Below are positions 3,573 through 59,800 of a stretch of 64,000 bases of DNA, one piece after another. This DNA comes from Orbicella franksi (lineage: Eukaryota), in NCBI GenBank assembly GCA_964199315.1, contig OZ116709.1, positions 11,904,001 to 11,968,000 of the forward strand, given 5' to 3'. Under the pieces are notes generated by a model. That model saw nothing but the letters and a program-made list of their open reading frames with translations, ran no database searches and was not told the origin of the DNA. Position numbers and translations under genes: made by a program. How positions within the stretch are numbered: position 1 is the first letter of the stretch; each line of letters opens with the position of its first letter.

Positions 3573-5459
3573 GGTTTAAAACCTCCCTGCGCATGGAAAA
3601 GTATAGGAGATGCTTCGTATTTGAAATTATTTTTGGGCGCGAACGCCGCGACTAACGAAATTGGTTTGACTCTTGACTTGAGCAGTTTAGGGAAACACAA
3701 TTACTCCAGAACATGAAAGCCGGGGTAACAATGTCAACCTCGCCGTTTACTGAAACGAAACCTTTTAGATGCAAACCTATATACTGAGTTGTCACGGCGT
3801 CGAACGCACTCATAACCAGTCTTGGATTACTACTAGTTCTATAGTTCATATAGTATGTAGTAAACGCAAAGTTGAATTTCAAGGATAATATTTCCACTTT
3901 AGAGTTCACTAATAGGTCCTGGTGAATGCATTATAGACTGATTATACAACAATTAAAGTTTCCTTCTATAATTAGAATACTGTACCTGTAATTCCTGCTT
4001 AATTTGAGCGCCGACCACCAGTGAGCAAGCACTGTAATGATGTAGAAACTCACCAAGACGTTTGCCAGGAAATGAAGGCTCGTGTCTGACCAGCTAAGAT
4101 AAATGTTTCTACGAAATTCAGTAGAAAAAGGATTTCCGGTGAACCATTTACCAGTAGGAAAGTCGGGGGCACAGTATATTGCTTTAAATAACTTTAAAAA
4201 TAGACTTAAAGATAAACAGAAGTCATCAAGACGAACTTCCGTCAAGAGGATTGCTAACATAACTCAAACGAAAAGTATGTAGCAGTGAAGAAGGAAGATC
4301 GAGGAGAGAAATTATAAAAGAGAAATAATTATTATTGCCGTTCAACAATGTCAGGAATTACAGCCAACTACAGCCTGAAAAAAATGGTTTCACTTTTTAA
4401 ATAACATGTTCTTTAATTACATTTCTCCTGAAAAACAAGTTGGGTAAACACTTACAATGCAAACACTTCCTGAAGTTATATCAGTGCCTCAGGGGTCGGC
4501 TCCGTATAAACTCATTAAATAAAAACGAATTTCCGCAGAAAGGAAATGAAGGAAAGACACGAGACAGTTGAAACGACGTCGTAAACAACTAAAAAACAAG
4601 CCATACAGAAAACAAGTTTGTTTGCAGGCTTTTTTGAACGATAAGCCCAGCGCGTGTTTGTTAGGGAAAAGACAGACCACCCGGGCAAGAGAGAAACCAA
4701 ACACTGTTGGTAAGAGTCGTTCACTTCTGACAAAATTTCAACATTAAAAAGCCATAAACCATGGTTTTTTCTTTTTGATTGTCTATTTTTTTTCCTGGGA
4801 ACATTCTAATCTTACATTTTAAATTTCACAAGTCTCGATCGATCTAGGAAATGTTACGTAAATAAAGTAAGGACGCCATCTGGTAAAGCAGGATTGGAGT
4901 GTTATGGTTGAGTTTTAGGTTTCATAGAAACCTGTGATTTCTTTCGTATCGGTAAATTACAAGAAACCTTCCTGTTTTGCCCTCTCGCAGAAGACTCAAC
5001 AACTACTACCGTTATCTTTAGACCAGACTGGGAGCTTTTCTTATTGCGAAATCAAACTAGAATAGACAGGCTTTGTCCTATGAGTTTGAGCAGTGATTAT
5101 GCTGTGCAAGACATCATGCATGCATGTTATTCATTTGCCATTGTGAGTTGTTCAGCTTGTGCTGAATTTCACAAATTCAGATGCTGCGAAGGTCACTTGG
5201 TGCACGTCTAGGAGACAACGAATCATAACAAATAATAAAACGATGAGACAAAAAGAAATAAGCGCATCCTTGACTTCCTGATCTACATCATGTTGTTATA
5301 CGTTAATCAAACTGTTTAGTGACGCTGCTCTCGACTTACAGTGTATTTTCATTCCTGTCAGCCACCTTCAGCTGTTTTCGCTCGTTGTTAATAGTGAAGA
5401 ACTCCAATAATACCATATTACATCTAACGCTATTCTAGCACCGAAATGAAATAATTTAT

Positions 5460-6140
5460 ACCATACTCATGCAGTTCAACTGTATAGGCTTGCTATGCAT
5501 CGCCAACATTTCTTTGCTTCTATAACATAACTAGGACCCTCGACTAGACCAAACAGCACAAATTTATAGCAAGAACAAAATTATAACTGACAAACATTCG
5601 GCGCCAATGTCAGTAGAGTTTGGAGAGGTCTGGAGATTAAGGCAGTTCACAATAAGGAGGTCAGTCTTTTTCTGTCAGTAGCACTGGACCGCCGGATTGA
5701 TCTAAATAATGGTAATCAAGAGAGAAAATGATCGAGTGCCCCAGTAGAAGTAGTTTTGTTGTGCGGGTCTGAAATAAAACAAGTAAAATAAGCTTAACTG
5801 GGCTAATGACCTCAGTGGTCTTTGTTGTCATTCCTAGTTCATTTTCATTGATCGCTAGTCTACCGGACAGCCAACAGAGATTCAGGGGAAGACATGTTCG
5901 TGATGTCCAAGATGTGATAAATATCAAGAAAACTTTCTGAAACATGAACGTTATACCAACTGTTGTAGGCTCGCGCTGCGTATTGCTCAAGTTATTACTG
6001 TATAGAGAATGATTTCAGTCCCCTTTCTTGATTGTTCATTGTTCATCATTCATGGGAAGAATGCTTATCCCAGCTGACAAACTGCGGCTATCCTTAGAAT
6101 TCACGTTACTTCATGTTCCGATTTTTTTCCGCGCCCTTTA
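5460..6140 (+). pseudogene. Decayed class A GPCR relic
   Basis: Frame from 5660 reads VSLFLSVALDRRIDL (TM3/DRY-like); frame from 5797 reads TGLMTSVVFVVIPSSFSLIA...INIKKTF* (TM5-ICL3-like). Frameshifts and stops are present. Confidence 0.3.
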
Positions 6141-6801
6141 ATTGTTACAGATTTTACTAGCTTAAAGGAAGTGACTTGAAATCATGAAGTTTTTGTTTGT
6201 ATGATACGAACAAAAAGATCATGATTTCAAGATACGAACGCTCGAGGACATGACGGAGCTAATCGTTGATCATCAGTGTACTTCAATCTTCTTGGTAATT
6301 GGTGAAACGAAGAGAAAGTTTGAAATCATAGGACTAGTGGGCTGTGGGCCGTTAACGTACACAGACGTCTTCCATCTTGCTTCCAACGGGGAAGAACGTA
6401 AGGCATGTATAAAATGAAGGAATTAATGAAAAAATCCTAATCATTGCATAGCTTTGGTGTCTCAGAGTTTGTTTTCACCCTGCCGGACCATGCCAGCTGT
6501 TCCGTTCGTAAGGGTTTTGTTTGCCATTGGAGTCAGTCTTCACCACTGATGTTGAAAGTCAGTGGAATGGCCGCCATCTTAGATTAACTCAGTGGTCGTT
6601 TCTTAGCCGGAGAGCTTTTAGTGAACAGTTTGGATTTTTGATATCAAGAAATGCTAGCACGAGTACATAAGCTAGGGTAAATGGAAGGAATCTTGGAACA
6701 AACCGTATGCATTTTTATTTACTAACTGCAGGGTTATTTTAAAACACAGTGTCTAAATGAGAAAGAAGGAGGAAACAATTTGAGTCCTCGAGCTACAAGT
6801 A

Positions 6802-7136
6802 GGGGTGGCGAATGGTCCTTCAAATCCATGGGTCTCGTAAACGTTTCGTTAAGTTTCTTGGGTCTCGTAGTCTTGATTTTTTCCCAAAGCTGTTTCGGAG
6901 TCTCCAGTTCTTGCAAGCTAGGCTAAGAAAGTCTCGAACGGTCTTGAAGTAACCATTTGTTTGTTTGCGTTTATAAATGACGTCTTACTCGTCTTAGAAT
7001 ATGAACGTCTCGAGCTCGCATTTAAAACACGTTGAGGTCTCGGTCCCGCAGTTGAAAAAGTCAAAATACCTCGGGCTTACAAAGAAAAACGCTAGTCTCG
7101 TCTTCTTGCAAGTTGCATTTACCATTCACCAGCCCT
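6802..7136 (-). mobile_element. MITE family A copy (reverse orientation)
   Basis: Begins GGGGTGGCGAATGGTCCTTC and ends GCATTTACCATTCACCAGCCC; similar to 50280-50877. Confidence 0.75.
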
Positions 7137-10100
7137 TACGGTGCAATACGGAATTTGAAGCTTCAGCCAGAATCTTCGAATTATTATCAGTGCTAAAAAT
7201 GGCGAGGTGTTTAGGGACTGACACAATTTTTGCATCTCTTTCCAGCTCGTCACGATATTTTCTCTATTTTAATTATGTGGAATTGTAAGGATCTTGGAAC
7301 TCAGAGACTCGGTCGTGCATTCTGATGATGACAAGCGGAAAAGTTCTTGCAATGGACGTGTCAGTTTGTTTCGGCTCTGAAATGTTTTATTGACCCATGG
7401 AACGAAACTGGTTGAAATTCTAAACAATGCAATGTCTTTTACTCCTCAGACAGCTACATTATTTTAAAGAGGCACATCTGAACTAATTGAGCAGATTATC
7501 TTGGCCAACCTTAATCATATAATCCTCGGTGTCTAAAATTTTGTGCACCTGAATCAGTTCAGTCGCGCTTCATTTTGGACCTGCATGATGTCCACAGTAT
7601 GACGCAGGTCTGTTGAAGATATTCTCTCTGTTCTATGATAAACCTGTGATTTTGAAAATTAGCCAAATTTGGTGAAATTCCTTTACACCCTAACTTATAA
7701 CTGTGTGTTCTTTCAGCCGTACAAGTTCAAGGTATCAACTGATGGTTAATACCGAACTGCAAAACTGTAATGAAGAACTGTATCCAATCTATTTAATATG
7801 CTACTGATTTGAAGCTAAAAGGCTGGGATTTAGTTTGTTTGCCATTTATTCTTCAGTTATGCTAAGGCCCTCCATTTGCTAAATTAAACTGCCTAAATGG
7901 TTTCTTTCTCTATCGGATAGAAGACTAAAGTCTGTACACAGATTGTCATGTACTTTTGTCGGTGCTTTGTAAATTAAGGTCTTCGAAAAGCGAGGCCATA
8001 ATAATTTCATATATATCTCCTGTCAGTGCATTGTTCTAAATTTCCAAGGGGATTCTAAGGAGTTTGAAGTTACCTCGATGGAGCGATGTCAGTTCATTTC
8101 AGTCCATTATTTTTTAGTCAATAACTTTTAATTCAATTCTCAGGGACACGTTCACGAAGAGATAACTTGATCATGAATTTCGGCCTGCATGCCGTAAGGA
8201 ATTTTATGAATTTCATGAACTGCAAGTATTTATAATCTCTGAAATTCGTTTACTGTCCTTTGGATGCGATTAAGTTGTAATCTGAAAATACCTCAATAAT
8301 CCAGAATTACTCTATTATCCTTTTAGTACAGGAATTGTATTTCATTAAAGCGGTACAAATCATTCTGCGCTAGCGCTAGCGGAATCTTATGACTGACAAT
8401 TGTAAAATGAAGGGATGTATTCACTAACCTGAAATTGAGCGTCCTCAAAAGTTCTTGTCCTGAGTGCTGTTTATTTCAAAGATCATTTATATGATATTTA
8501 CATAAGGAAAACCGAGTTGGACTTTGGGAAAATGTAACTCAAGAAAAGGCTATTATTTGGGGCGGTATTACTGTTTAGATGTCTAGTTTTTGACCACGGC
8601 AGTTTCACTTTGGATTAAATTTGAATTCTTTGCTGCTGACTGTGAATGTGGACGTTTTCTGGTTCGTCTACGTCGCAAAATCTGCGGAACGGTTTTAGAG
8701 AAGCTTTTAAAGTAAATCGACAGAACGGCCTAGAGACCGTATAAAGCCTTCGGTCCGATTTATTCTAGTCATAGTAATACTGTCTATCTACACATGCATG
8801 CATTACCAGCCGGCATCGGTGCGGGCCAATAATGCGATACGAGTACATAGCCAAACTGATTGGTGGGGCATGGCGGCAGCACATTCTCTTGGTACTAAAT
8901 CTAACGGATTATCCGTTACAATAATTATTTGTCAAGCCCGCAGCTTGTGAGCTTTCAATAGGGCTGTACCCATTTTCAATAGGGCTGTACCCATTTGAAA
9001 GGTTCTGTTTTTTTCTGTGGGGCATTAGGGGTTATCAAGTAGTACTTATATAAAGTGTATAAAAATAGACTGATTGAATCTGTTTTTTTCCAGAAGCGGA
9101 CCATATGTTTTTTTCCTCTTTCTTTTTTATGTCTATTTTTTGGTACCGAATGGACAGTACGGGACGTGTTGTATAAGACAGCAGTGTTGCCCACTGCAGA
9201 CACTCAAAACGTACGGCTTACTGTTTTTTTTTTTTTTTTTTTGCTGTTTAGGAATTTCAGCTCTCTTTCAAAGGAGAAACCAGGACAATGCGAGATGAAT
9301 CTCTATTAAAACATCATTTAAGCCAAGATTTGCAACTTGGGAAAATCGAGTTTTTCCTAAGAAGATCTTAGAAGTCAATAAAGATGAAGAAAATGTAAAG
9401 CATTGCAAATTAGTATCCGCATGACTGTCATCCTAAACATTTGAAATATATAGTGTATCGCATCCCAGGTAGGAGAGTAAAACCTGAGTAATAAAAATAC
9501 ACGAGCTAAATTCAGGTATTGAAAGGGTGCATCTAATACCTTTGATATGTCATCGAAACTGTGAGATTCATTTCACAGATTTAACTTTTTGAAAGAACCT
9601 ACCGAAACATTTCCTAATGGAGCCTAACGGATATCCCGAGCTATCGATATCGTCTTGAAATGGAATTACAGTTATATCAGTTCAAGGGAATATTTTCCGC
9701 GCAGGAAGCGGCGAAAGGCTTGGCTCCGCTGAGCCGGATATTGAGCAAGCGTCACCATAATTTTTTCCTTGATAACAAGAATGCTTCCGTCTAGGAAGTC
9801 ACCAGTGAAGTGTCTAGTAAAAAGAGGATGAAATTACTGTTTACCTTAGTCTCATTTTTGAATAAAACCAATACAGTATAATATTTATTACACGTTGATA
9901 TCCAAAGTACTGAACATCTCAGTTTATTCTATTACTATTACCATTAAGAGTCTCAAGAGACTGTAGGACACGGTATTTTAGGTAATTCGGTTTATTTTCG
10001 TCAACTACCGATGAGTTCTAATTTTATAACTGTCTGAGAAGCAGCCGTTTATTGGCAAAATTTCGGGCACATATCAAAGGGTCATCTTCATAAACCTGAA

Positions 10101-11320
10101 AACGTCGGGCCGAAGTTTTTTTAAGGTCGACCCAAATGCAATCTGTGTTACTACTCTTCTTCAATTTTGCGCACCCATGCCAAGTTTTGGCGATTTTGTG
10201 TTTCATTCCCGATTGATCTTGACTGTCAGGGCCTATCAGTTTTTCTCTCCACCCTGCCTCTGCCTACTCCAGTCGCTGTCCTATATTTTTCTTTTTGTGT
10301 ATTTTTACAACCCGCATTTTAATCGCGTTTTAAAAACGATTTAAGACTAAATTTGCTGACTTATCTTACTGAAAAAACTAATAGTAGTAATGCTTCATAT
10401 AGACTAAAGTTTTGCTTCTTGCTGAAATTGGCCTGGTTACACTAATGTAGATACTTTAGCTTGCATGCAGCAACTCGACTTTTGCGATATAATAAAAATC
10501 CTATTTGCGAGAGATGCTAATTGAAGTTAACTGCCTTGCCAAAGAACACACCACCGATCAAAGACCCCGAAAATCTGAACATTTCACGTCATTTCGAGTA
10601 CACATGGAAATTTATAACAGTCGGTCATTCGAGTCTGGGACAGATGTTAGACAGACAGGACGCCTGTGTACAGACTGAACATACAAATTGACGGTTTCAC
10701 CAGTAATCTATACAGTAGCTTACTTAATCGTCTGTTTCAGTTTTATGACCCTGCAATTCTCTTTTTAAGGACTCTTCGATGTAACACAGTACATAGGGAC
10801 AATGCTGACAGACGACTACAGCAGCAGGGATTAGCTTCGTTATAATTATCTGGAGAATCAGCGCAGCCGGGAGATGTGATATTCCACTTTAAAGAAGCAA
10901 TTACAACGACCATATTTTCATACGTCTTCGTAATTAGCTTTCATCTAAGCTTCTCACACAAACAGTTTCAAATATGACGTATATTTATAGATTTGTTTTA
11001 GTATCAAAATGTACTGGAAGATACATATGTACGGAGGGGAGGAGAAGGGGAGGGGTTGGGGGAGGGTCGGGGTGGTTTGTAGGTTTTCAGTTTGAGTTTA
11101 GACCGGTTTAGAGTTTCAGATGAGTGTACGAATATCGTGTGACGTATGTGAACATAATTAAAAAGTTTAAACCGGAAATAATTAACATGTTTACCAGATA
11201 CAGTCACGTAAAAAAAAATGCGGCACTAAACTGAGATATTAACAAGCTGTTTACAGCCTCTCTCTTCCATAGGCGGCGCGGATGATTGAGTGATTCAATG
11301 AACACCAGACGAAACAAGCT

Positions 11321-41887: not shown

Positions 41888-44039
41888 TCAGTGGGTCACA
41901 CAATATCTCTGTTCCCTTCTTTCACTCGTCCTAGTGTTCTCTATCACTGTGTATATGTAGTTGCCAGTCACGGAACCACGTGCTTATCACGTGTTTATCA
42001 TTCATCGCATGCCTCTTTAAATTTTCCTTTAAATTAAGCAAACCACGAGGGCGACGACAACGAGAATGCCACCAAGCGAAAGCTTTTATGATGAGCAGGC
42101 CAAATGTCATGCGCTTGGGTTCTAAATTAACTTAGTACATTTCTTAGCCGTCAATTCCTCTGCAAGGAGTCAACAACAGTTCTGCGTGTTTATTATTATT
42201 TTGGAGGACGTGTACCACGACGGATAATTTTTCTTCTTTTCTTGTGGCACGGAAATAAAACGCTGAGGAATTAAGTTTTAAGACCGACAGGCGTATTGAA
42301 CAGATCGAGATAAATGCAAGATGGGAAGATAAAATATCAATCGAACTTTTACAAAGTGTTGTCCTCGTGTGGTCGGAATCATTACGCACAAAAAAACTGT
42401 GGAAGCATATATATATAAGTACACAATAACCAAGGAAAAATTATCTTATTTTTTTGTATTTCTATTCATTATACCTTCGTTCGTTGCCCTCATACAGGAG
42501 TGACATAGGTTGTATTTACATGTCGGGCAATGCCATGGCTTGTTATCTGCGACGCTGCTCTGAGGTGAACCGCAGTTATCACATTTCCAGAAATCACTGA
42601 ACACTGAACACACGTCCTGCGATTTTGACTTATACAGTGGGTGGGCATGTAATGGCGTAGGGTGCGGCTTAAAGCAATCAGGGCACACATCGAATTCGCA
42701 TTCTGAACAATGATAGGCGAATCTGAAAAAGAACCAAAACATAAAGTTAAATCCAACAATATCGTCAAAGCGTAAGAGTTTTATTCAAATCTGAAAGTAC
42801 AGATCATCACTTCAGTGAAATATCGTAGTACGGTTTAAGTATACTCGACAAATGCTACCAACAACAGTTATAATAAACCGCACATCAGCTTCTCAGACTA
42901 TAAATCGATTTATTCTAATCACATGTTTTTAACATTAAAATCATTTTATTTTTACAAAAATTTATTTTACCGTCAAAAAAGCCAATCTGAGCGTTCCGTT
43001 CCCTCTGACATGTAAATGTAGTATAATTTCTATTTCCATTTTATTTTTAGGTAAGGTTACAAAATGTATCTATTCAAGGTTTTCGTGTGGAATACTGGCG
43101 AAAATTTCACTTGCAAAAATTTTATTTTGATATTCAAAAGACCCACTCTATACGAAATAATGTTTAACTCATTGTTTGGAGGCGGCGTGGGGACTGGTTT
43201 AATTTGGGTGCAGGACTTGAAATCTGTTTTATTTGATCACTAAATTGAATTTGTATCTCAATACACCCTAGCTAGTTCAACTCCTCGGTAATGCTTGTAA
43301 ATAGCCAACTGGTCTGCCTTCCGCCAGTTGAGATTTTTAAGCCAATTATGTTTTTCTGAAATATTTGTTTTTTTGAAATATTTGTCTCTTTCAGTTTAAA
43401 TGGTATGTCTGTGGTGTAGCTAGATGTAGCTAAGCGAATTAACCACAATAAACAAACATTGTTTTTTGTTTAATTTCTCTGACTTGGAATATTCATCTTC
43501 ATACACTGATATCCAGTAACTAACCATTCGAGATACCGGTGCTAGAGTGTATAAAAACAAGAATTGTCACATACTTTTCATACCACCTGCTTTCATTTCC
43601 ACAGATGTCGCACACCCAGCGGCCATTCTTGTGTGCATAGACAAGCGAGGTGTTCACCACTTTCAGTTCATGGACGTGGCTCAGATGTCGCTTCGGCTCG
43701 AAGCAGTCGCGGCAAATGTCAAAGTCATTGCAGGTGAAACAGTGGTAGGAGAATGTTTGGTTGAGAGTTTCACTTGTGTTTTTACAAACGGCACACCTCC
43801 AAATTCCATGCTGGTTTTCAGAGAGTATAGCGCTTGTACCCGTGTAAAGCAGGCAATGGTGATGCACCAAGGTGTTTTGTGGAGGAGGTAGCTTATTCTT
43901 CCAAGCCTGCAGGTGCAAATTCCAAAAAGTTACAGTCAGGGAAGGACCATTATTTTTTTGAGAGGGAAGTGCACTCATAATAATAAAAATAAAGCAATGA
44001 TCAGATTCTTACCTGTATGATCCGGCCCAGCTTGTGCAT
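41888..44039 (-). CDS. Protein of three tandem His/Cys-rich zinc-finger repeats (DC1/C1-like or ZZ-like); 4 coding exons, 221 aa
   Basis: Exons (-): 44013-44039, 43575-43906, 42475-42722, 41888-41946 (666 nt, GT-AG, phases 0/2/1). Three repeats of HxHxL...WxCxxC...(Y/W)HCxxCx(F/Y)(D/N)xCxxC. The first and last exons are less certain. Confidence 0.78.
43178..43462 (+). mobile_element. Degraded tRNA-derived SINE (second family) in intron 2 of the zinc-finger gene
   Basis: GGAGGCGGCGTGG head and CTTGTAAATAGCCAACTGG...CCAGTTG core; its 3' end recurs inverted at about 46650-46720. Confidence 0.6.
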
Positions 44040-46139: not shown

Positions 46140-46230
46140 TCTAGTCTTTTCATTTTTCCAATCAGAGCGCGCGCGGTCGTTGTTAATTACCTTGCATGTG
46201 ACGTCACAAAGTCAATATATTAATGGCGAC
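46140..46230. promoter_or_regulatory. Candidate promoter of the SANT gene, possibly shared with the divergent zinc-finger gene
   Basis: CCAAT at 46158-62, a CpG-rich GCGCGCGCG run, a full CRE TGACGTCA at 46199-46206, and an AATGGCG motif at 46222, all within 150 nt of the predicted ATG. Confidence 0.5.
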
Positions 46231-46304
46231 TTGAGCGACTGACTGCGCACCGTCGCTGTCTTCCTGCAAACTGTTCTGTGTTTTCTCCAACAGGAAAAAA
46301 AAAT

Positions 46305-49300
46305 ATGAGAACGCGCCGCGCTGAAACGAGGTAAGAACAGTGGTACAAAGTAAACTTCACGAAACATAAGCATCGGAGAAGAATTTTTTGTTCAAACAAA
46401 AAATACACCTCTATGAACTTTTTAAACCTTACATAGCGCTAATGCTTCCTTTAAAATATCCCTCCCTGAAGTTTCAAGTTATATCGTTAATTTCTCCACA
46501 GTTCTCCAAACTTTGATCCACAATACTTCTGGAACGAATATCTCCAGAAATGGACGGTCAGTGGGTAACTATCAGCCTGTAGGTTCAATTCTCGTTTCGA
46601 TATGTGAACGCTCTGGCAATATCCTAAGTTGCTTATTGCACTGATAAATGAAAAAAATTCGCTTAGCTACACCTAGCTAGTTCACAGGCATGCCACTTAA
46701 ACTAAAAGAAAGAAATATATCAACTAAACATAGATCAGCCTAGTGCTAGTAACTGGCTGGAGGGAGCTGGGATAGATCCAAAAACTCTACAACTCTTTGC
46801 CTCATGAACTGACTAGGAGGTTTATTAACTGAGGTCTGTAAAGGATAGGGCTCCACAAGCTAGTAAACGATTAATTTACGGTTTTTTTAATCTTTGAAAA
46901 GGATTTGAGAGTAAACTGCATCGCAGAGGCCCACCTCCCGTTGTGCCGAGATAAACCATGCACGGTGAACTTCAAACCAGGTCAGGAGAAGCATTTGAAC
47001 TGAAAATATTGATATCAGCTGTTCATGCGACATATTTGCACGAAACAAAAAAAACGATATTGAAGGGAAAATAGTGCAGTTACACTCCTTTAGGACACCG
47101 TAGGGACCATAGAAAGTGTCCGTACGTACGTCCTAGTGGGGTTTCCTTATCGGGCGTGACCGAGTGCACGTGGTTCAGGGCGGTGGATTTAATCGATAAT
47201 CTAAAGATCCCTCTTTGAAACCCACAACCTTGGCACAGGATTTGTTTTCGGTAGTCCTGACATCAACTCCGCTGTCACGCTTTGTAAATAACCAACTGTT
47301 ACGCGCGGTCAGTCTTCCACCAGCTGGTTTTCTTTTAAAAGTGATCTACTTTCAGCTCAAAATACTGGTTTGTATGTTCATTTTACAATGTAGAATTGTT
47401 TTTTTACTTTCTCTCTCTTTCGGTCTTTCGTTCTTGTTTTCGTTAGAACGCATAAGAAGACTTAATATCAACTTAAGGGCGGAATCACATAAGAGATGGA
47501 CAGAACAAGAAAAAAAGCTTTTCACTCAGAGGTACGAGAAAGTTATTACAGGGTGAAACAAGGGATTAAAAAGTCAGATATAAGATTGTATACACTCACA
47601 GTCCATGCAACCCATACTATTATTGGGTTCAAATAAGGAAGCAGGAGTGATGATTTCTACTTCACCTTGACGAGATACTTGTTCTCCAGCTTTTGGCCAG
47701 ATCACCCCAAGAGGTCATCGGTATGTATTTAATGCTTTGGACAGCGAAAAACACCGTGAAAGTGTCGTGGACTTGATCCAGATCCTCCCGATGGATTAAT
47801 CTGGGGGTCACTAGGTTAACTGTAGTTGTGGGGTCTAGCGCCTTTTTAACATTCTTAACGGAATTCTCCATTTCTAGGAAAAAGCATGGGTAGTAAGTGC
47901 AAGCTGCCTCGATTAAGACAATGGCCGTTTCCTTTCTTTTCGTAGTGTGTGTATTCTGATCCGACTTGTGGCGGTACGAATCGACTAATAAATAAAGCAT
48001 CAACGTATCATATTCATGGTAAAAGTCTTCAACAATGAAATCCAGCAGACGGTTTATCTGTTGGTTACTTTGCATGAAGGACCTCTGCCATATAACGGGA
48101 TAAAAAAAACTGATGGTTTTTAAAAGTCGAACTTCCTAAGGCTAGGCCTTAATTCAATTGTGAAGATTCAAAATTAAATGTATAATTTGTCTCATAGATA
48201 CATTGAGGTCGGAAAAGATTTTCCGCTAATTGCCGATGCATTGCCGAGCAAGGTAAGCGTCACAAGCAGTGAGCTAAAATGACCTATTTTTTGAGATTCA
48301 AATAGTAAAGTATAAACTATTAATATTCTTGAAATAAGCATTGCATCGTGTCCAATAAAAGTATCTTTCGTCGCTCTCTTTCAGACGACTGAGCTGACTC
48401 ACCTGACATTTAAGACTAATTTTGACACAATCAATTCGATAAAAACAGTTGCTACACAATAGAAAACACTTTGCTAAGCACATGTACCCTTGCAGACCTA
48501 TTGCTCTATGTCCTAATTACAGAACATGTGCTTAATGAAGAGAAAATCCAATGAGGAGATGTCATTAGCATAATTCTCAAACCATTTGAGGTCGCTCGCT
48601 CTCCGGCATGCACACTCGATATCTCAGTGAGAGCGAGTGCCTTCAAACAACCTGAGAAAATGGGCCACATGGTAAACTTAACGCGCAGTTTCTAGTTTGT
48701 CTCGCCTTTACAGATTACTCGACAATATTGTCCGTCGAAATCAACGATTCTGAATGTATACATGTTCAGAAAGCGTACCCACTGGACGACAAAGTAGATC
48801 AGTCGTATTTGTGCTCGTTTTGGTTCGTGTTTGCATTCTTGAGTGCTATATCTTATATGTAATGACTTGGGTGTCTGGAAAACCGAATAGCGAATAGTCG
48901 AATAGCGAACAGCGAATAGTTCCGAATAGCGAATAGCGAATAGTACGAATAGTCTCGAATATTGCGAATAGTGGCAAATAGTGACAAATCGTAGCAAATA
49001 GGGTACCTTGTATCTCGCAGTCAACCTCGCAGCAACGTAGGATGGGATTTTCCCTCTAAAAAGCGCAGACGCTTATCAGGACAAAAAGTGTTTCTAAAAG
49101 TAACTTCTTCTGTTTTAACCGCTGCAAAAACGTAAATACGTTTATCCTTGTGTTTTCTGTTTTCTTAATGTCGGCGATGGACAGCCCTAGCCTGGGTCCG
49201 GAGAGGAAAAGGTAATAAATTCACTGAAATTCTGTTTCTTATTTGGATAATTAATTAACGCAGGATATTAGATCTAAAGCGGTGACTATTGACGACTATT

Positions 49301-51868
49301 CGTCACTATTCGCCACTTTTCGCGACTGTTCGCCACTATTCGCACTATTCGAGACTATACGCACTATTTGGGACTATTCGCTATTCGCTATTCGCTATTC
49401 GGGTTTTCCAGACACCCTAATGACTTAATATTTTAATATTTTTAATATTTAAGTTAGTCTAAACTCTCACTTTTCAGACGGTGGCCCAATGTATTCAATA
49501 CTACTACCTCACCAAACATCGATTTTGCTACAAAAAGGCGAGTAACTCATGATTGATACTACACGAAGCGAATGTATTTTCCTATGAAGGGAACGACTTT
49601 GTGAGTTTAAGAGAAAAACGCTGGCCTCTGAAAATTCCATTAGGTCTCTCTATATCTCTTTATATGAAAACTTTAGGCTTGTTCTTCTTAAGTCAATTAA
49701 AGTGCCCCTATGATCGATATCCATTTTTTCACATTTTCGAACACAATAGGTCTTTCCTAGATATCTTGTCAAATTTCAATCTATTACGAACATTGGAATT
49801 CACGCTTTTCGGACCTTTATTTCCGAGAATTTACGGCCGCCATTAATTTTCGTTGTTCCAAGTCTTGGTTGAGAATTGGAGGAAATGACGTCATTTACTT
49901 AAAAATACAGGTTTGAATTATATTATAACATAGCGCGCGCGCTAGTCCTATCTAATTCCAGGAGCCTCCTGCTAATTCCTATTGAGCCAACATGAACAAA
50001 ATCTCTATGTTTGCACGGCCGTGCGCACATAAGATGGCGTGTGCGGTTTCAATTTAGCAGCAAACTTTCCGTCGAGTTTAGTGCAAGTTCTTAAGTTTAG
50101 GCGAAGTGAAGATTATTCTGAACAATCCAAACTCTACTTCGAGCCTTTGACTTTTCAGCAAGCTAAGATTTTTACTTAAACCTGAGTATTTTGACTTTGT
50201 TTGCCTACATTTTCATTGAGTATTTTTGACTTTGTTTGCCTACATTTTCAGTATAATTAATTCGAAGAAGCGAATTTTAGGGGTGGCGAATGGTAAATGC
50301 GAGTCTGCGAGACGGCGAGACAGGCGTTTTTCCCTGCGAGCCCGAGACATTTTGACGTTTTAGATTGCGAGACCGAGACTTCAAAGTGTTCAGACTCTCA
50401 AAAGGTCGAGCCCACATTTAGTTGAGAGCTAGAATGAGCTTGTACAGCCTTTAGCCAGCTTCTTGGAACTGACTGGAACTGGAAATTCGATTATAACACA
50501 CTACGTTATGATATCCTAGAGAAAAATAACTGTTTGCCTGGCGCCAAAACGGACGATGCGACAGGTTTTGTTCCTATTTGTGGAATTAGGACAATTTAGG
50601 AAAATTAAAAGTTAGGATTAACTTTTTCTCGGAAAATTTGTAAGTTGCTTCATTGAAATTCAATATCAAGTGAAGCCGGAAGACGTCATTTATGAAAACA
50701 GATAAAGGAACGAATCGGGACTTCGAGACCCTTAGCCTTGCGAAAATCGAGATAGCTTCGTATAAGAATCGAGACTGCGAGAGGCACATAACCGCTAAAA
50801 AACGAGACTGCGAGACCCATGAAATTCGACTAAAATTTTACGAGACCCAGAGTTTTTGAAGGACCATTCGCCACCCCTAATTTTTCGTTGACAATTTTAG
50901 AAAACAGGTTAAGCGTTTTCGCCGGTTCAACCGTTGCTCAGTATTGTGGCGTGTTAGGATCCTAATGACCTTTGTTTTCCTACACCGTACATTGAGAGAA
51001 CTTTGTAGTCAATCACAAATAAAACATGTTTTAGCGCCCAAGTTGTTGTCGCCATGTTATAAAAGAATTGGTTCATGCTTTTAGCTGTGCGTATATTGAG
51101 TTATGGATGCACTTGGGAAGTTTGGAGAGCTCTCAATTCTTTAGTAACAATTAGTACAGCAATTCGCATGAAGAATAACAAAACTTTGGCTCTTATATTT
51201 GTGCAATTCTCTATTCTGATTGTGATTATAATTTCAACCTGTGTGATATTTTTGTATTGAAGTGAACTTCTATCTTGTTACAGTTACGAAAGAAGGCGAT
51301 CAATGAGGAAAATGGGACAAGATCTCGTCGAGCTAAATCATGTGGGAATGGAAAAGGAAGTAAATTACTTTCACAACGATCAGCAAATGGTGAGAGAAAT
51401 GCTAAAGAAAAGTTTCGAAAAACCTTTTCTTGCCCAGAACCTAACAAGGAGAGGAGATCAAGGACGTGGGAAGATCTAACTGATGATGACTTTTGTAGAG
51501 ATACAAAGAGGAAAAGCATCGTCAAAGAACCGAGTAATAAGGAGCACAAGCATTCTTACGACGGAAGTAAAGTTACGACAATCAAAAGAAAACGCTGTAA
51601 AGCTGATGTACAGCTAAAGGTCTCGAAGAAACTAAGACAAAGCAAAACAGCTGGCCATTTTTCTAGTCATGATAATACGTTATCACAACCTGATGTCGGT
51701 GAAGCTGACGGGAGCCGCGCGAGAAAGAGAAAAAGAAATAGTGCCAGAGGGAAGCTCTTCAGTAACCCAATAGCTACAATCGATCAATTCTCTGATGCAT
51801 TTGATTACTTATCAGATGGATCTTGCACAGACGAGGTACCAAACGAAATTCACACCAATGAGAATTAA
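46305..51868 (+). CDS. Small SANT-domain protein, NCoR/SMRT SANT1 (DAD)-like, with basic low-complexity C-terminal tail; 7 exons, 314 aa
   Basis: Exons (+): 46305-46330, 46502-46556, 46902-46980, 47447-47531, 48198-48252, 49478-49537, 51284-51868 (945 nt, phases consistent). Spliced exons 4-7 read RWTEQEKKLFTQRYIEVGKDFPLIADALPSKTVAQCIQYYYLTKHRFCYKKLRK, a clear SANT repeat. Exons 1-3 are less certain than exons 4-7. Intron 6 has a GC donor. Confidence 0.82.
47662..48483 (-). CDS. Putative nested antisense gene, 2 coding exons, 184 aa, tentatively TIR/SEFIR-like alpha/beta fold
   Basis: Exon 48403-48483 (ATG...CAG|GTGAGT) splices in phase 0 to the CCTTAG acceptor at 48135, followed by 158 open codons to TGA at 47662. 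Amino-acid composition is protein-like. The fold assignment is a pattern impression only. Confidence 0.4.
48869..49417. mobile_element. MULE-type MITE with GAATAGC subterminal repeats
   Basis: TIR GGGTGTCTGGAAAACC(C)GAATAGCGAATAG, with a perfect 9-bp TSD TAATGACTT (48860-68, 49418-26). It lies in intron 5 of the SANT gene. Confidence 0.9.
50280..50877 (+). mobile_element. TA-flanked MITE family A, full copy
   Basis: Perfect 14-bp TIR GGGGTGGCGAATGG, TA on both sides, and internal GCGAGAC repeats. Confidence 0.85.
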
Positions 51869-53819: not shown

Positions 53820-56800
53820 TTACATTTGTGTCTTAATGTGCTTAATGATGTCATAGTAAACTAGTTTAGCAGCGTCCAGCCCCCAGATGAAGTCCATATG
53901 ATCCCAATTCTTGATATACTTGTCGTACATCCTGTTCGGCAGCAGAGGAAGCAGGGCCCGGACATCTTCAGGGTCAGCTAGCCAGTCATTCTGCGCCCAG
54001 TACAGCGCCACAGGGACAGTCATTGCGGTTACATTGTATACTGGCGGAGTGTCCTAAAGACGGTTGCAATAACAAGTTAGTTAGTCAGCAACCCTTTGCC
54101 TACGTTTGAATTATTCCTTGCCCTTTACAGCGAGGACATTCAAATCGTGAGCACTCGTAATGTCTTGCATATTTTTAAAAGTGACTGCAGCGTATTTAGC
54201 TTTTTAACTTTGTAAAAACGCCAATCTTGCACATCATCTGCAGAGCTTAATTCCATTCTTTTGACGCTAAGTGTTCCTGGTTCGAGTGTCCTTACTCTAA
54301 ATGGCCATAAAACAAAAAAAAAAGGTGTGATTATGACAATTTCACAATGGCTTACAACAAACTGACTCGAAACGTACATCAGATGAGAACAGGAACAATG
54401 GAGATAATACGGCTTGAGACTTTTGACATCATGCATTCTATTCAAAATGAAATGATTCAGACATGCTCTGGATTCCTCTTCACCTTTCCAGGCTTTTTCC
54501 CGTCCCTATTAATAAACGTTCCTTGCAATAAAATATTGTGTCTCCGAAAACTTATGAGCCTAAAAACGAGACAACATTGGAAAGTGGGAACTGACTACAT
54601 TTAAGATTTTTTTTTCTTCAGAAACTGTTGTGTAAAAATCAGTGTCACTTTAATTTCATGACAGTAGTAGTTGAGTAATGACAATTTCGCAGAGGGTTAA
54701 CGGATTACGGATGATAAAGATTGAACTAGACCGAAAAAGATATTCAACACAGTGCCATTCGGACGCCATTTGAGACCATTTGATTTCGTCGCCGGCTCAC
54801 CTGTCCATAGTGCTCCATGTTTTCGCTAGCGCTTCCATAATTGTACATCTGAAACTTCTTGGATAAGTACATCTGTTGAGAGATACGTAAAAATTTTATA
54901 TTCCTAAAAATTGACTGACCTGAAAATGACAATGGCGAGATAAATCACTGGTCAAGCGTGATCTTTGCATCGAGCACTGTGTATAGACAGCACTCGTGAA
55001 CCGTCCCCAATTGTCTCTTATAACATAGAGACAGCTAGCTAGAGATACATCATTCAATAGTAAGACATTCATTCTTCTTCATCCTTGCATCTTACAATAG
55101 ACCCTTTGCAGGATCCGGTCACATGGTACTGAATTAAGGTTACAGTATACCTTCAGGGGTGTCTCGCGCGCAAGCAATGTAGCGCGTGCAGTTTAAGCTT
55201 TAGATACCTAAACCCCTATATCAAATTAAAGCTTATGGAGCTGGCTATCAAACTATACCAAGAATTTTGAAAGAAAGTGAATTGTCGAATTTTTCACGAC
55301 CACTAAATGCGAGCGCCCGAATCACCTCTCGAAAGCTACAAGTCAAAGCGAATTTCGTTTTTCGCTAATTTAATTTTTTCCTCGGTTTCAGGGCCCAAAG
55401 CGCTTAAAAAACGTGTCTGCGTTTTGGCATATTCGATTGCAATAAAAAGTTACAGAACATTTTCGAAATAGGATTAAAAAAATGTGGAGTGATCGTACAA
55501 AAATCGCTCTCGAAGAAAAAGTATTTCGAAATTAACAATTCCCAGACACGCTTTTGTAGTTTATATGTTAAACTAGCCACTGTCCAAATTTAAGAGCAAT
55601 TGAACAAATTCCCTTTGAGTTATAACTCTTTAAAGTGTCTGCTTCAAGTGAAAAAATTTATTCGAGAAAACAGCGCTAAGAAAAATTTTCTGCTTCGCAA
55701 ACAAACTCCGCCCACAAACGCCTTCAACTGGGTTCTCAGATAACTAAGCCAATCAGTGAAGGGAAACTTTACTACCGTTAACCTCCTGGTGAAATTTACG
55801 CGCGAATAAAAAACTCTTGTGTTTCGCAATGCGCTCAAGGAACCGAAGGCAGAGGGATAATTTTTCTGTAGCTCGGTTTTTCTTGAAGCTGGTCTGGCAA
55901 AATGGGGAAGACTAAAAAGGATACGAACGCTAGAGTGGCTGAGCGAAGGAAACAAACAAAAGACAGCGCGGAGAGCAACTGTGTGTGGGCAACTGTGCAT
56001 GGATAATATTTCAAATGGTCTCAATGAGTCCGACGATTCGTCGATATCGGACTCATCAGAAGAGTCTCTGTCAGCATCCCTGTTGTTGCTGTCAAGTTCC
56101 GAAATTTTTACAGAACCTTTCTTTTCTCTTACCACGAATATTTGCCCGCCTTATACGATAACTATAGCTTTATCCGCGTGGCGAACTTTCGCTTCTTCAC
56201 TCATTGATGTACTTTCATTCGTTCTTCGTTGTTTTCGCTTTTTCGAACCGGTCCATGGTTTAAACGTGGTCTATGTTTACTTATAACTTAATAGACACAC
56301 GCCTAATATCAAAAATGCTGGGTAGTTAGAACAACAATGTTGATCAACTGAGTAGTCAATTCGTGACATCGATATAGGTAATTCCCGCGAAAATCGTCTC
56401 GGTTGATTGCATCGCGCCATAGGGCTGTCAATCAAGAGGTAAACTTTTACTTCCGGTGAAAACGTAAAACCGCCATTTCTCCGCCAATATTTAGCCTTTT
56501 TCAAAAATTTTTTTCAGAAATTAGAGATTATTCTTCGACCACTATTTTGACCCAAAAATCCAAATTTGAAGAAAATTATCAATCGGAAGGTATACTGCAA
56601 CCTTAATTACGCTGGGACGCAAGTTACACAGTGGGACTTCCAAAACAAAGGAAAGTCGGGCTGCACTGGTACGAGTTCCTTTGTTTCGGAAGTCCCACTG
56701 CGTAACTTGCGTCCCACCGTAATTAATTCCGTACCATGTGACCGGATCCTACAAAGGGCCTATTAACGTGTGAGACAGCAGATTAGTCACATACCTGAGC

Positions 56801-59800
56801 AAAGTGGACCATGTCTCGAACTGATGTGCCCGCTGGAGTGTGTGAGAAATACACTGGAAGTCGCGTCTGTCAATAAGAAAATCATCAAAGACAGTGAGTT
56901 AAATAAATGCCCAACTCATTCTCCACTGCATCCTCTATCCTTCTTAGGAGCTTGTTCTGATCACGCTTCAAAGACGTGCAGGTGCAAATCAAACAACTGG
57001 TCTTGAAGAAAACGACTGACCGGGTGAAAGGGAGGATAAAGTGTGAGAGAGTTAATCCGCCATATAGGCCTTATTCACAAGGTAATATCTCTCAAATGAG
57101 CTATTTTTAGATATGGTACCCAGAACAGCGTGGATAATGTTAACACGCGCATTGCGAATATGTTTTTGTTGAGGTTGAAAATACGTAAAAAGCGTCTTGG
57201 GCTGTCCACGTGAGCAAACTCCGTTTCACAGGATTGGTTATTGGTAGAAGCGTATCCTATTGGGATTGAGGACTGGTCCAAAAATAACTTGAGAGGGATT
57301 ACCTTGCGAATAAGGCCTTTATGAGGGATTAACTCTCTCACTCTTCATCTTCTCTTACCGCGTGTGATAAAACTCGTGAACCAAAGCTGAAAGCAACTTT
57401 CCTTGAGCTGCAAAAATGCCAGTAAGCGCCCTCAGTGAGTGCTTTATCGAATTCTTACTGCAATGAGAAAATCTCTTCAACAAAAAAAGGCCAACTCACT
57501 TTGTTAAGCTGCTGCTTATCAAATCCACAGATGACAAAAACAATATCCCCACAGAATGTCTCTAAGTCTTTCTCGGAACACACGTAATCAGCTAACCAGC
57601 GAATGATGAAATCAGATGGAAGAAAATCACGCACGCCGAAAAGTTTGAACAAAGCCTAAGATAAGCAAAACAAGAAAGAAAGATGTCAGTCCCCCGCAGG
57701 ATGTTCAAACAGTGGTCCCTCAGAATGATTTATGCGTTGCATATCTTGCTTGCAAAAATGCAGATTACTTTTTCTTCTATGTAAAAAAGAATGAGCTAGC
57801 TAGTTGATGAAGTTGATACAGTGGACTCCCAATTCCTCGAGCCCTCGATTTTTTCGAATCTCCCGACTACTCGAACCAAAAGTCGTTTCCCTCCATTCAG
57901 TTGAACACTAATTTTAACTAACCGATTTTTCAAACCAGGTTCGAGAAATCGGGATTCCACTGTATAATAATATTTTTGAAACATGAACGTTTCTTCGCGG
58001 GTTGAAAATCGTCTCCTATTCTATTCTCAGTGATGACGTCAGAATGACTACACAGATTCGTGTATTGTCATTGGTTGTTATTAGGCTTTGAAGCTTCGCG
58101 CGGTTGTAAGAAACGGCCAATAAGAAACTCTCATGAGGGGGGAGAAGGTGAAGGGGGATAGTTGACGATGCAGAGAGAGACGTTGTTGTAATCAGGTTAC
58201 GATTAAACTAAACAAGGACAAGAAAGATGAAAAGACAAACTACCGTATAGTGTACAGTACCTGAATTTCAGGAAGAAAATGAGCCAGATATTTAATAGGA
58301 CTCTCCATGTGTCCCACTGTCGCGACGGGTCCAAGAGCAAAGAACTTCTTCACCACTTTGGCCAATTCTTTGTTTCTGGAGAATTCTGCAAAAGCGATCA
58401 GGGTTCCTTGCGAATGTCCGACGTAATACAATGAAGGCTGTGAAGTCTTTGCTAATACAAATTTCAACATGGCGGGTAGGTCATGACGAGCCATTTGATC
58501 CCAGCTGTAAGATTAAACAAAGTTTCCAGAAATAGGATATCATGAATACGTGCCCGGCTCAGTTATACCCGGGAAGTTATAAACTACCCAGAAAATATAG
58601 TTCAGTTTTTTTCCATCCTAATATCGTCGACCTAATAAGTCGAATTTTGGCTTATGCGCATGCTCCAAAGTAATACATTGTTCATTTCGGTACCTGATCC
58701 TCAGGAAAATCTTGCTCCTCCGTAAGAAATTGCTTTTTCAGCAAAGTTAGGCCAATTCAGAGTCGTGGCAGCCAAGAAATCGAGTTGACGGTAAAAAAAC
58801 CCATCATTTTTAAAATTTGGCCGTTAAAGGGTAAGAAAACGTGTATTTATTTGTCCACGTGATAAACTGGAGTGTTTTTTTTGGCCCTGATTCGCAAGAA
58901 ATGTTACGTAACGGGATCTTCAATAATTGTAATCACTGTTATCCCTCAATATACTCATATCAAAGACGATTTCCATCAGAATAATGACAAAGTAACGGGA
59001 CCTGAACCTCTTTTCTGGTGACGCCTGATAGAACATTTATAAGTAAACTCTGTTCTTTCTATAAGGATATATTTTACTAGTATAAATCTAAGAGCGTCCT
59101 ATCACGAATGCCGTTCTCCGATTGGCTACGCTACTTACTATGTGTTCTGATATAGATAGTGAGTAGCCTAGTGAGTAGCCTAGCCCTGCTAGGCTAGTGT
59201 TTTCGAAGTAATATCAAGACTGAAAATTGTCATTTAAGAGTATTTCTAAAATAATAAACCCTAGGCTGAGATTTGGCAAAGAATACAATTTGTGTTGAAA
59301 ATTTGTAAATACAATGCAATTAAATGTTTTTGACTGAACCGTATAAAATTCTTCCTTTCTTTTAACTGAAAACTAACCAAAAACAGCACTAGTCGTATAT
59401 TCGATACTGATAACATTTTTTCAAAAAGTTATGTGTATCGTATCAGGTTTTGTTTCCTGCGGTCGTGCTCCAAAATTACTTAATAGCTTCAACGCCATAA
59501 AACGGAAATGCTATATGCCATACTCTAAGAACATTCATAAGAATATTTTCAGTCTAAAATCGGCAGAAAAATAAGTATATTCAGGCTGGGCCGGAAAAAC
59601 AATATTCTTGTAGAAAAAGAGAATGTTAAAGCATACGAGGACCAATCTGTAACCACTATTTCACTCTTGATAAATAGCCTGTACAGAAAAGTCTAGTTTA
59701 CAGCTGGTAAGTTAGGGCCAAGTCGCACTGGAGGGCGATTTCAGATTTGTTCTGGACAAATCCGACTTCAAATCAGGCAGGAACAAAAGTCGGACCGGAT

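Follow-up and report, generated by a model that had tools for sequence, protein, structure and literature searches.

A coral gene for a short protein with a SANT domain of the HDAC-cofactor class

In a 64,000-nucleotide stretch of the Orbicella franksi genome (the window), we observed what its sequence indicates to be a real protein-coding gene, so far seen only in robust-clade stony corals. Its SANT domain is, by sequence comparison, nearest to SANT1 of NCoR/SMRT among solved structures, and belongs by sequence to the HDAC-cofactor class. In our leading reading, which we hold tentatively and put at somewhat under an even chance, the SANT may dock a class I histone deacetylase, making the protein an accessory HDAC cofactor or a competitor of NCoR. 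To our knowledge, activation of class I deacetylases in animals examined to date takes place solely within large corepressor complexes (NCoR/SMRT for HDAC3, ELM2-SANT proteins for HDAC1/2). If the reading is true, an activating SANT surface would be able to work, or compete, outside corepressor scaffolds, and the coral protein would be a minimal natural tool for inositol-phosphate control of HDACs.

Table 1. Features of the coral SANT gene and its introns (window coordinates)
Feature	Position	Strand	Remarks
Promoter-like block and 5' UTR	46150..46304	+	CCAAT at about 46159, GC run, CRE-like TGACGTCA near 46200, A-run just 5' of the ATG
Exon 1	46305-46330	+	ATG at 46305; peptide MRTRRAET; donor AG/GTAAGA
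Exon 2	46502-46556	+	Codes SSPNFDPQYFWNEYLQKWT; almost unchanged between species
Exon 3	46902-46980	+	Codes DLRVNCIAEAHLPLCRDKPCTVNFKP
Exon 4	47447-47531	+	Variable linker ERIRRLNINLRAESHKR and SANT helix 1 (WTEQEKKLFTQ)
Exon 5	48198-48252	+	SANT helix 2 YIEVGKDFPLIADALPSK; K88 codon 48214-48216
MITE-like insertion, intron 5	48868..49420	.	Long CGAATAG-rich terminal inverted repeats; outside the gene product
Exon 6	49478-49537	+	SANT helix 3 TVAQCIQYYYLTKHRFCYKK; Y109/Y110 49502-49507; K113, H114 49514-49519; GC donor AAG/GCGAGT
MITE-like element, intron 6	50277..50880	.	Perfect 18-nt terminal inverted repeats
Exon 7	51284-51868	+	194-aa tail; stop TAA 51866-51868

The gene occupies positions 46305-51868 of the plus strand, and the SANT domain is encoded in exons 4-6. 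An earlier note on this DNA had proposed seven phase-consistent exons giving a 314-aa protein, and we found that the exons indeed sum to 945 nt with all phases in agreement. When we compared the window with three orthologous loci (L006-L008; four coral species in all), every exon, phase and splice site was retained, the exon 4 acceptor of L007 being displaced by 3 nt with the frame intact. The MITE-like insertion of intron 5 was missing from these three loci, and the element of intron 6 sits within a stretch of about 1.2 kb that is missing from the orthologues. The pN/pS ratio in the proposed frame was 0.29 in exons 1-3 and again 0.29 in the SANT exons (0.8-2.7 in the other frames), and 10 of the 21 changes in exons 1-3 were synonymous (binomial P = 0.005). 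The earlier note had named the SANT as the only folded domain; it is indeed the one recognisable domain, but that description overlooked residues 1-27 (exons 1-2), which are conserved more highly than the SANT. The 26-residue exon-3 segment was less conserved than this N-terminus, the linker before the SANT differed between corals (ERIRRLNIN, DSITKLNID, DRLANLTVD), and the orthologous exon 7 ORFs showed 67-99% identity.

Two NCBI gene models, made independently and both annotated as hypothetical proteins, were found to be orthologues: Oculina patagonica ACROYT_G008480 (P0023, 671 aa) and Desmophyllum pertusum OS493_001029 (P0024, 454 aa). The N-terminus of P0023 is the same as that of the window protein (MRTRRAE.SSPN.DPQYFWNEYLQKWTDL), and in both models SANT helices 1-2 agree with it, as do LRKKAI.E.NG, KLRKT.SCPE and CC.ASKRKSIV in the tail. 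We also considered that there is no working gene here, the locus being a decaying partial NCoR duplicate or a series of open frames strung together by chance. This would fit the frameshifts in the tails of L008 and L009 and the start of L007, which reads ACG; however, the ratio of 0.29 holds in the correct frame only, conservation extends to the splice sites and the promoter block, and the two public models are independent. Such a reading is already poorly supported, and we give it hardly any credence.

The sequence also argues against a longer gene extending upstream, the alternative to the stand-alone gene that had been claimed, and for a start of the gene's own. It is disfavoured because of the frame-breaking length changes just 5' of the ATG, the conserved CCAAT/CRE block and the minus-strand neighbours. 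The promoter-like block was nearly invariant across the four species, while the A-run 5' of the ATG showed interspecies length differences of 11, 10 and 7 nt and is therefore noncoding. The start ATG is shared by L006, L008 and P0023, and the variable sites of exon 1 were third codon positions. A second ATG, with good context (AAATGG), lies at 46550 in exon 2, and P0024 begins with the MD... form that corresponds to this start. Exon 3 may be an alternative cassette exon, since its acceptor is weak and its flanks are strongly conserved; it is present in P0023, and a search for an RNA-structure signal at this exon found none. Direct splicing of exon 2 to exon 4 would yield a 263-aa isoform from the ATG at 46550.

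When we searched PDB chains with phmmer, the best single-domain match was the SMRT DAD (1xc5, 4a69; 47 bits, E 2e-11, 25 of 51 residues identical), followed by NCoR1 SANT1 (2eqr) at 40 bits, and no other single SANT domain among the PDB chains scored as high as these two. A close match to NCoR/SMRT SANT1 had been proposed before, and the search agrees with it; WxEQEK, LIA, KTVA.C and YYYLTK...YK are the motifs in common with SANT1 of NCoR1 and NCoR2 (SMRT) (1XC5, 4A69, 2EQR). MIDEAS scored 29 bits, RCOR and MTA1 26 bits per domain and SMRT SANT2 24 bits. With the exception of one Trichomonas Myb, the strongest matches were all SANTs of HDAC corepressors (NCoR, RCOR, MIDEAS, MTA1, RERE). The ELM2-SANT corepressors (MTA1-3, MIER1-3, RCOR1-3, RERE, MIDEAS/TRERF1/ZNF541) have a SANT of the same inositol-phosphate/HDAC-binding class, which at 23-29 bits per domain scored below NCoR SANT1; the GKDF and KTVAQC of RCOR and MIDEAS also occur in the coral SANT. 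Against Pfam Myb_DNA-binding (PF00249) the coral domain scored 35.9 bits, above the cutoff of 24.4.

The SMRT residues that contact Ins(1,4,5,6)P4 are K449, Y470, Y471, K474 and K475 (PMC7700698). In the phmmer alignment K88, Y109, Y110 and K113 of the coral protein are identical to the first four, in all orthologues, while the fifth position holds H114, exactly as the earlier note had read these five sites. The position of SMRT Leu468, which contributes to HDAC3 specificity (PMC3710971), is Gln in the coral SANT. MTA1 resembles the coral SANT in that one of the basic contacts of SMRT is missing: it has one inositol-phosphate-binding lysine less, and is still activated. The isolated MTA1 SANT interacts with HDAC1 in cells, and the SMRT SANT is likewise a binding partner of HDAC1 (PMC3710971).

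We further looked for the other parts of NCoR/SMRT, which have about 2,400-2,500 aa. The likeness to the deacetylase-activating domain covers its SANT part; the stretch N-terminal to it varies between corals, and the DAD-specific extension (SMRT 389-429, helix H0) could not be detected there, the phmmer alignment covering only residues 44-94 of 4a69_C, that is, the SANT. The exon-4 peptide alone likewise gave no match against the PDB. Only 53-70 residues precede the SANT, and the coral linker is presumably about 9 residues shorter than its SMRT counterpart. The RVG tether at SMRT 351-363 (described in PMC3710971) is likewise missing from the coral protein. The absence of a GPS2/TBL1-binding region, a second SANT and nuclear-receptor boxes, as claimed before, held in Pfam and regex searches: with the E limit relaxed to 10, P0023 still matched no Pfam family of the GPS2/TBL1-binding repression domain, no second Myb/SANT match was found in the 194-aa tail or in full-length P0023, and the CoRNR-box pattern [LI]xx[IV]I, sought by regex in P0016, P0023, P0024, the window protein and three orthologues, occurred in none of them. 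By these searches, SANT1 is the sole NCoR feature in the coral protein.

In contrast to the ELM2-SANT proteins, the coral protein showed no Pfam-detectable ELM2 in the orthologue N-terminus or the exon-3 peptide. The latter (DLRVNCIAEAHLP) slightly resembles the ELM2 motif EIRVGxxYQAxI quoted in PMC3710971; there was no Pfam ELM2 match there or in residues 1-120 of P0023, nothing was found with this peptide against the PDB, and the Arg of the motif is Gly in Oculina. In a language-model feature search, the first 100 aa of P0023 fell close to some clusters that bear ELM2; we treat this as a lead only.

The sequence shows the gene structure, its conservation and the class of the SANT; expression, HDAC binding and a role in activation or competition we infer. 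The protein consists of a highly conserved 27-residue N-terminus, the 26-residue exon-3 segment with the variable linker, a SANT1-type SANT and a basic tail. The SANT would dock on HDAC3, or possibly HDAC1/2, with an inositol phosphate held between the enzyme and Lys88, Tyr109, Tyr110 and Lys113, the arrangement known from SMRT-DAD:HDAC3 and MTA1:HDAC1. Nuclear import and further partners would come from the tail and N-terminus. The protein would then serve HDACs as an accessory cofactor that does not depend on nuclear receptors, or would compete with NCoR for the enzyme.

The same domain could instead have been re-used and no longer bind a class I HDAC; its new partner might be, for example, histone tails, DNA or a different chromatin enzyme, and its NCoR likeness would reflect descent only. 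Neither the DAD extension nor an ELM2 tether was detected, K475 and L468 are replaced by His and Gln, the N-terminal 27 residues rather than the SANT are conserved most, and the family-level matches are generic Myb/SANT. However, the residues that never vary in 5-7 corals coincide exactly with the inositol-phosphate contacts (GK.., YYYLTK), and nearly all top structural matches come from HDAC cofactors rather than from histone-binding SANT2 types such as SMRT SANT2; we regard re-use as unlikely, though a serious contender. A decoy, whose SANT binds HDAC3 or HDAC1/2 without activating it and by titration depletes NCoR or ELM2-SANT complexes of the enzyme, would present the same surface, and would suit a protein without SMRT's N-terminal extension along HDAC3 and its 351-363 tether (PMC3710971). 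Yet the conserved N-terminus could itself act as a tether, and SANT engagement is itself the activating step in MTA1 and SMRT (PMC3710971); we take a decoy to be very unlikely. A bolder form of the cofactor reading, quite unlikely in our estimate, is a free-standing activator of HDAC3 or HDAC1/2, gated by inositol phosphate and without NCoR scaffold or ELM2, in which the invariant N-terminal motif SPN.DPQYFWNEYLQKWTDL would be a new kind of tether switched by exon 3 and the two starts.

At exon 6 the public models differ from ours. P0023 uses exons 1-5 and 7, and P0024 exons 2, 4, 5 and 7; both splice exon 5 to exon 7, so that SANT helix 3 is lost and their SANTs, at 22.2 and 20.4, stay under the Pfam threshold of 24.4. 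If the main product really skips exon 6, which keeps the frame because the exon is 60 nt long, helix 3 and all its Tyr/Lys contacts would be removed, and the full SANT would be made rarely or never. Besides the two models, the non-canonical GC donor of this clade speaks for skipping; GC was read in the window, L006-L008 and L017. However, purifying selection on exon 6 is clear (of its changes in five species, 9 are synonymous and 4 nonsynonymous), its YYYLTKH core is unchanged in seven species, and two species have the canonical donor GTGAGT (L009 and L016 carry GT). GC donors are, moreover, commonly missed by ab initio gene predictors. We consider predominant skipping highly unlikely, and favour the reading that public coral annotations overlook a GC-donor exon coding SANT helix 3, so that the family has been filed as "hypothetical protein" with its domain unrecognised.

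The exon 7 tail is basic and of low complexity (23% K+R), and no Pfam domains were found in it. Both NLS-like motifs pointed out earlier are present, KRKRCK at residue 221 and RARKRKR at residue 265, and the C-terminus carries a conserved acidic-hydrophobic motif, IATIDQFSDAFDYLSDG. The tail is probably disordered and NLS-bearing, and its K+R content and KRKR-type clusters make it look nuclear. The tails of P0023 and P0024 are 250-370 aa longer than those of the window's clade, and the last exons of more distant corals code for 423-563 aa. The description of the gene as miniature thus applies to this clade only, with its 314 aa, and not beyond it, the Oculina model reaching 671 aa.

The seven-exon SANT gene proposed in the earlier note could be rebuilt in full: the exons summed to 945 nt, the phases were all consistent, and the product was 314 aa. 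The DNA is eukaryotic, with a G+C of ~39% in the window. The introns were GT-AG throughout, except for intron 6, which had the donor AAG/GCGAGT.

Features of the SANT gene and its surroundings (window positions)
Feature	Position (nt)	Strand	Remark
ZZ / C1-type zinc-finger exons	42449-42784, 43523-44008 (42.4-44.0 kb)	minus	two exon-like ORFs, cysteine-rich zinc-finger matches
Upstream block	46150-46260		just 5' of the SANT gene
Look-alike acceptor	46292-46293
Exon 1	46305-46330	+	start ATG at 46305
Exon 2	46502-46556	+	rebuilt base by base; second ATG at 46550
Exon 3	46902-46980	+	rebuilt base by base
Exon 3 with conserved flanks	46885-47000
Exon 4	47447-47531	+	rebuilt base by base
Open frame in intron 4	47665-48135	minus	157 aa
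Exon 5	48198-48252	+	rebuilt base by base
MITE-like insertion	48868-49420		intron 5, ~550 bp
Exon 6	49478-49537	+	GC donor
Stretch missing from orthologues	49930-51140		intron 6, ~1.2 kb
Inverted-repeat element	50277-50880		inside the ~1.2-kb stretch
Exon 7	51284-51868	+	TAA at 51866-51868
Lipase-like exons	~53823-57655 (about 53.8-57.7 kb)	minus	downstream of the SANT gene

The case for a real gene was built on a comparison with other corals, comprising three long orthologous loci (L006-L008) and several short ones. With exon 7 as the query, orthologous ORFs were found at 67-99% identity in further assemblies derived from corals. As introns also aligned at ~70-80% among the orthologous loci, plain conservation is weakly informative. 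L006, L007 and L008 each retained the seven exons with all splice sites, the exon-4 acceptor of L007 being displaced by exactly 3 nt. When pN/pS was estimated (Nei-Gojobori, six species pairs), the proposed frame gave 0.29 both for exons 1-3 and for the SANT exons; the two alternative frames gave 0.84 and 2.74 for exons 1-3, and 0.81 and 1.58 for the SANT exons. The variable columns of exons 1-3 were split into 10 synonymous and 11 nonsynonymous (expected synonymous 20.6%; binomial P = 0.005), while the other frames yielded 6/15 and 2/18. Conservation across the protein was highest in the N-terminal MRTRRAE.SSPN.DPQYFWNEYLQKWTDL, which is without a known relative; the window and Oculina patagonica showed 2 differences in the first 29 residues.

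We observed that the block just 5' of the gene (CCAAT, a GC run and TGACGTCA) was near-invariant among the species compared. The A-run between this block and the first ATG differed in length between species by 11, 10 and 7 nt; as these are not multiples of three, the run is non-coding. The AG of the look-alike acceptor was missing in L008, and the genes on either side are encoded by the minus strand. For these three reasons a longer transcript reaching in from upstream, which the earlier note had named as a threat to its model, is unlikely.

Two public gene models were found at NCBI using a long-tailed coral relative (P0016) as the query. The Oculina patagonica model ACROYT_G008480 (671 aa) starts with MRTRRAEASSPNSDPQYFWNEYLQKWTDLGVNCIAEAQLPL and corresponds to exons 1-2-3-4-5 as proposed. 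The Desmophyllum pertusum model OS493_001029 (454 aa) starts with MDDRLANLTVDL and corresponds to the form that begins at the second ATG, with exon 2 joined to exon 4. Both models join exon 5 to exon 7, leaving out the 60-nt exon 6 and with it helix 3 of the SANT domain. The resulting two-helix SANT falls below the Pfam cutoff (22.2 and 20.4 vs 24.4 bits), which probably explains why the public models are named "hypothetical protein". Exon 6 showed 9 synonymous vs 4 nonsynonymous changes in five species. Its donor was a canonical GTGAGT in L009 and L016 and GC in five loci (the window, L006-L008 and L017), and such an interchange at the same position is as expected for a true donor. Since exon 6 is under selection, its omission is probably an annotation gap, caused by failure of the predictor at the GC donor.

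The second ATG lies within exon 2 in an invariant context (AAATGG), and joining exon 2 straight to exon 4 from this start gives 263 aa. This alternative was derived independently of the Desmophyllum model, which matches it. With exon 3 included, the frame from the second ATG hits a stop; when exon 3 is left out, the first ATG opens a short overlapping uORF only. Since the Oculina model uses the first form and the Desmophyllum model the second, both appear plausible as isoforms from these comparisons, and the short form may be one of them. L007 has ACG in place of the first start codon, which had raised the idea that the first ATG is a mere uORF and the second the sole start; this was rejected on the basis of the codon pattern and the Oculina model. 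Exon 3 and ~10-20 nt of both adjoining introns were ~95% conserved, well beyond what the protein needs (pN/pS was 0.45 over codons 25-53, which lie mostly in exon 3). Regulated cassette exons typically show such a pattern, and exon 3 may therefore be one. A structured RNA or snoRNA was rejected for this exon (no Rfam match, no covariation, fold z-score +0.99). An ELM2-like motif was likewise unsupported, as Pfam found no ELM2 domain in the exon-3 peptide or in the Oculina protein.

On Pfam Myb_DNA-binding, the SANT region reached 35.9 bits. In a comparison with all PDB chains, the best single-domain scores were those of the SMRT deacetylase-activating domain (DAD; 1XC5, 4A69) at 47 bits (E 2e-11, 25/51 residues identical) and NCoR1 SANT1 at 40 bits, in agreement with the identity assigned earlier. 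These were followed by MIDEAS (29 bits), RCOR3/RCOR1 (26, 24 and 22 bits per domain), MTA1 (26), SMRT SANT2 (24) and RERE (23); RCOR3 ranked top overall only because its two domains add up. One non-corepressor match, Trichomonas MYB21, reached 34.7 bits over two stretches, which is inside the corepressor score range. Residues were numbered from the PDB alignment, the list of SMRT contact residues (K449, Y470, Y471, K474, K475) in PMC7700698, and Leu468 of PMC3710971. K88, Y109, Y110 and K113 correspond to SMRT K449, Y470, Y471 and K474, H114 to K475, and Q107 to L468. Thus the alignment bore out the claim that four contacts are kept and that K475 is replaced by His. These residues were invariant in every orthologue read.

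It has been reported that the isolated MTA1 SANT binds HDAC1 on co-expression in cells, that HDAC1 also binds the SMRT SANT, that the HDAC3 preference for the SMRT type is due partly to Leu468 (vs Glu325 in MTA1), and that MTA1 is functional with one lysine fewer than SMRT (Millard et al., PMC3710971). Compared to SMRT, the window SANT keeps 4/5 contacts, and its residue at the specificity position is a neutral Gln. Given these findings, the stand-alone SANT could engage a class I HDAC through inositol phosphate. We consider such engagement a tentative candidate for the function of the protein, at somewhat less than an even chance, judging from sequence and from analogy with MTA1 and SMRT. Activation and mere occupation of HDAC look alike at the level of sequence; a pure decoy, in which the protein merely occupies HDAC, would be quite improbable. 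A third reading, that the SANT has been re-used with another partner, is unlikely, though less so than the decoy.

The DAD extension was not seen: the 94-residue 4A69 chain aligned over its SANT part only, with the 43 preceding residues unmatched, and the exon-4 peptide alone had no match in the PDB search. The linker before the SANT Trp differed among corals (ERIRRLNINLRAESHKR, DSITKLNIDLRADLLKT, DRLANLTVDLRAHLLER). A possible likeness of ERIRRLNINL to SMRT DQQRIKFINMNGL was set aside, because neither Oculina nor Desmophyllum conserves this stretch. As the earlier note had stated, there was no second SANT or GPS2/TBL1-type region (Pfam) and no CoRNR box (motif search); the motif search also found no LxxLL. 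Since four defining features of the NCoR/SMRT family were looked for and were absent, the protein is not a member in the full sense. What it shares with the family is the HDAC-activating type of SANT, in a new free-standing setting.

The tail was 23% K+R and had no family match; the predicted NLS-like motifs RARKRKR and KRKRCK were present. The description as "miniature" holds for the window's clade. It does not extend to more distant corals, where the last exon codes for 423-563 aa and has its acceptor and flanking motifs in common with the window, which suggests that ~250-370 tail residues were either lost in the window's clade or gained in the distant corals. In L008 (~10400-10590) and L009 (~1200-1250), a 1-nt deletion puts the RKRKR...IDQFSDAFDYLSDG end out of frame, and unless this is an assembly error, these two would be without the conserved C-terminal motif. 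Tail queries matched only coral ORF fragments, and a word-based query with residues 1-110 of the Desmophyllum protein found nothing beyond the two annotated orthologues. All other relatives were ORF fragments from coral-derived assemblies. By searches with length windows and exact words, the family thus appears so far only in robust-clade scleractinians.

The zinc-finger ORFs upstream are probably part of a divergently transcribed neighbour that shares an intergenic region with the SANT gene. The ORFs downstream we take to be an acid-lipase/alpha-beta-hydrolase gene, from recognised motifs such as WDHMDFIWG. PF00561 matches were found at the corresponding place in orthologous loci; the single window exon scanned with Pfam (53823-54053) gave no family. 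The minus-strand frame inside intron 4 had no Pfam match at E <= 0.01, and it aligned with orthologues at 70-78%, the same as the surrounding intron. The MITE-like insertion in intron 5 has long CGAATAG-rich terminal inverted repeats and is absent there in L006-L008. Within the long stretch in intron 6, parts of which have copies elsewhere in L008, lies an element whose 18-nt terminal inverted repeats are perfect (TTAGGGGTGGCGAATGGT / ACCATTCGCCACCCCTAA); intron 6 is only ~130 nt in L009 and L016. One related coral (L012) carries a large insertion 5' of exon 5, in its intron 4 (3852-7594), with a YqaJ-type exonuclease ORF, a Harbinger-type DDE_Tnp_4 transposase and a THAP ORF.
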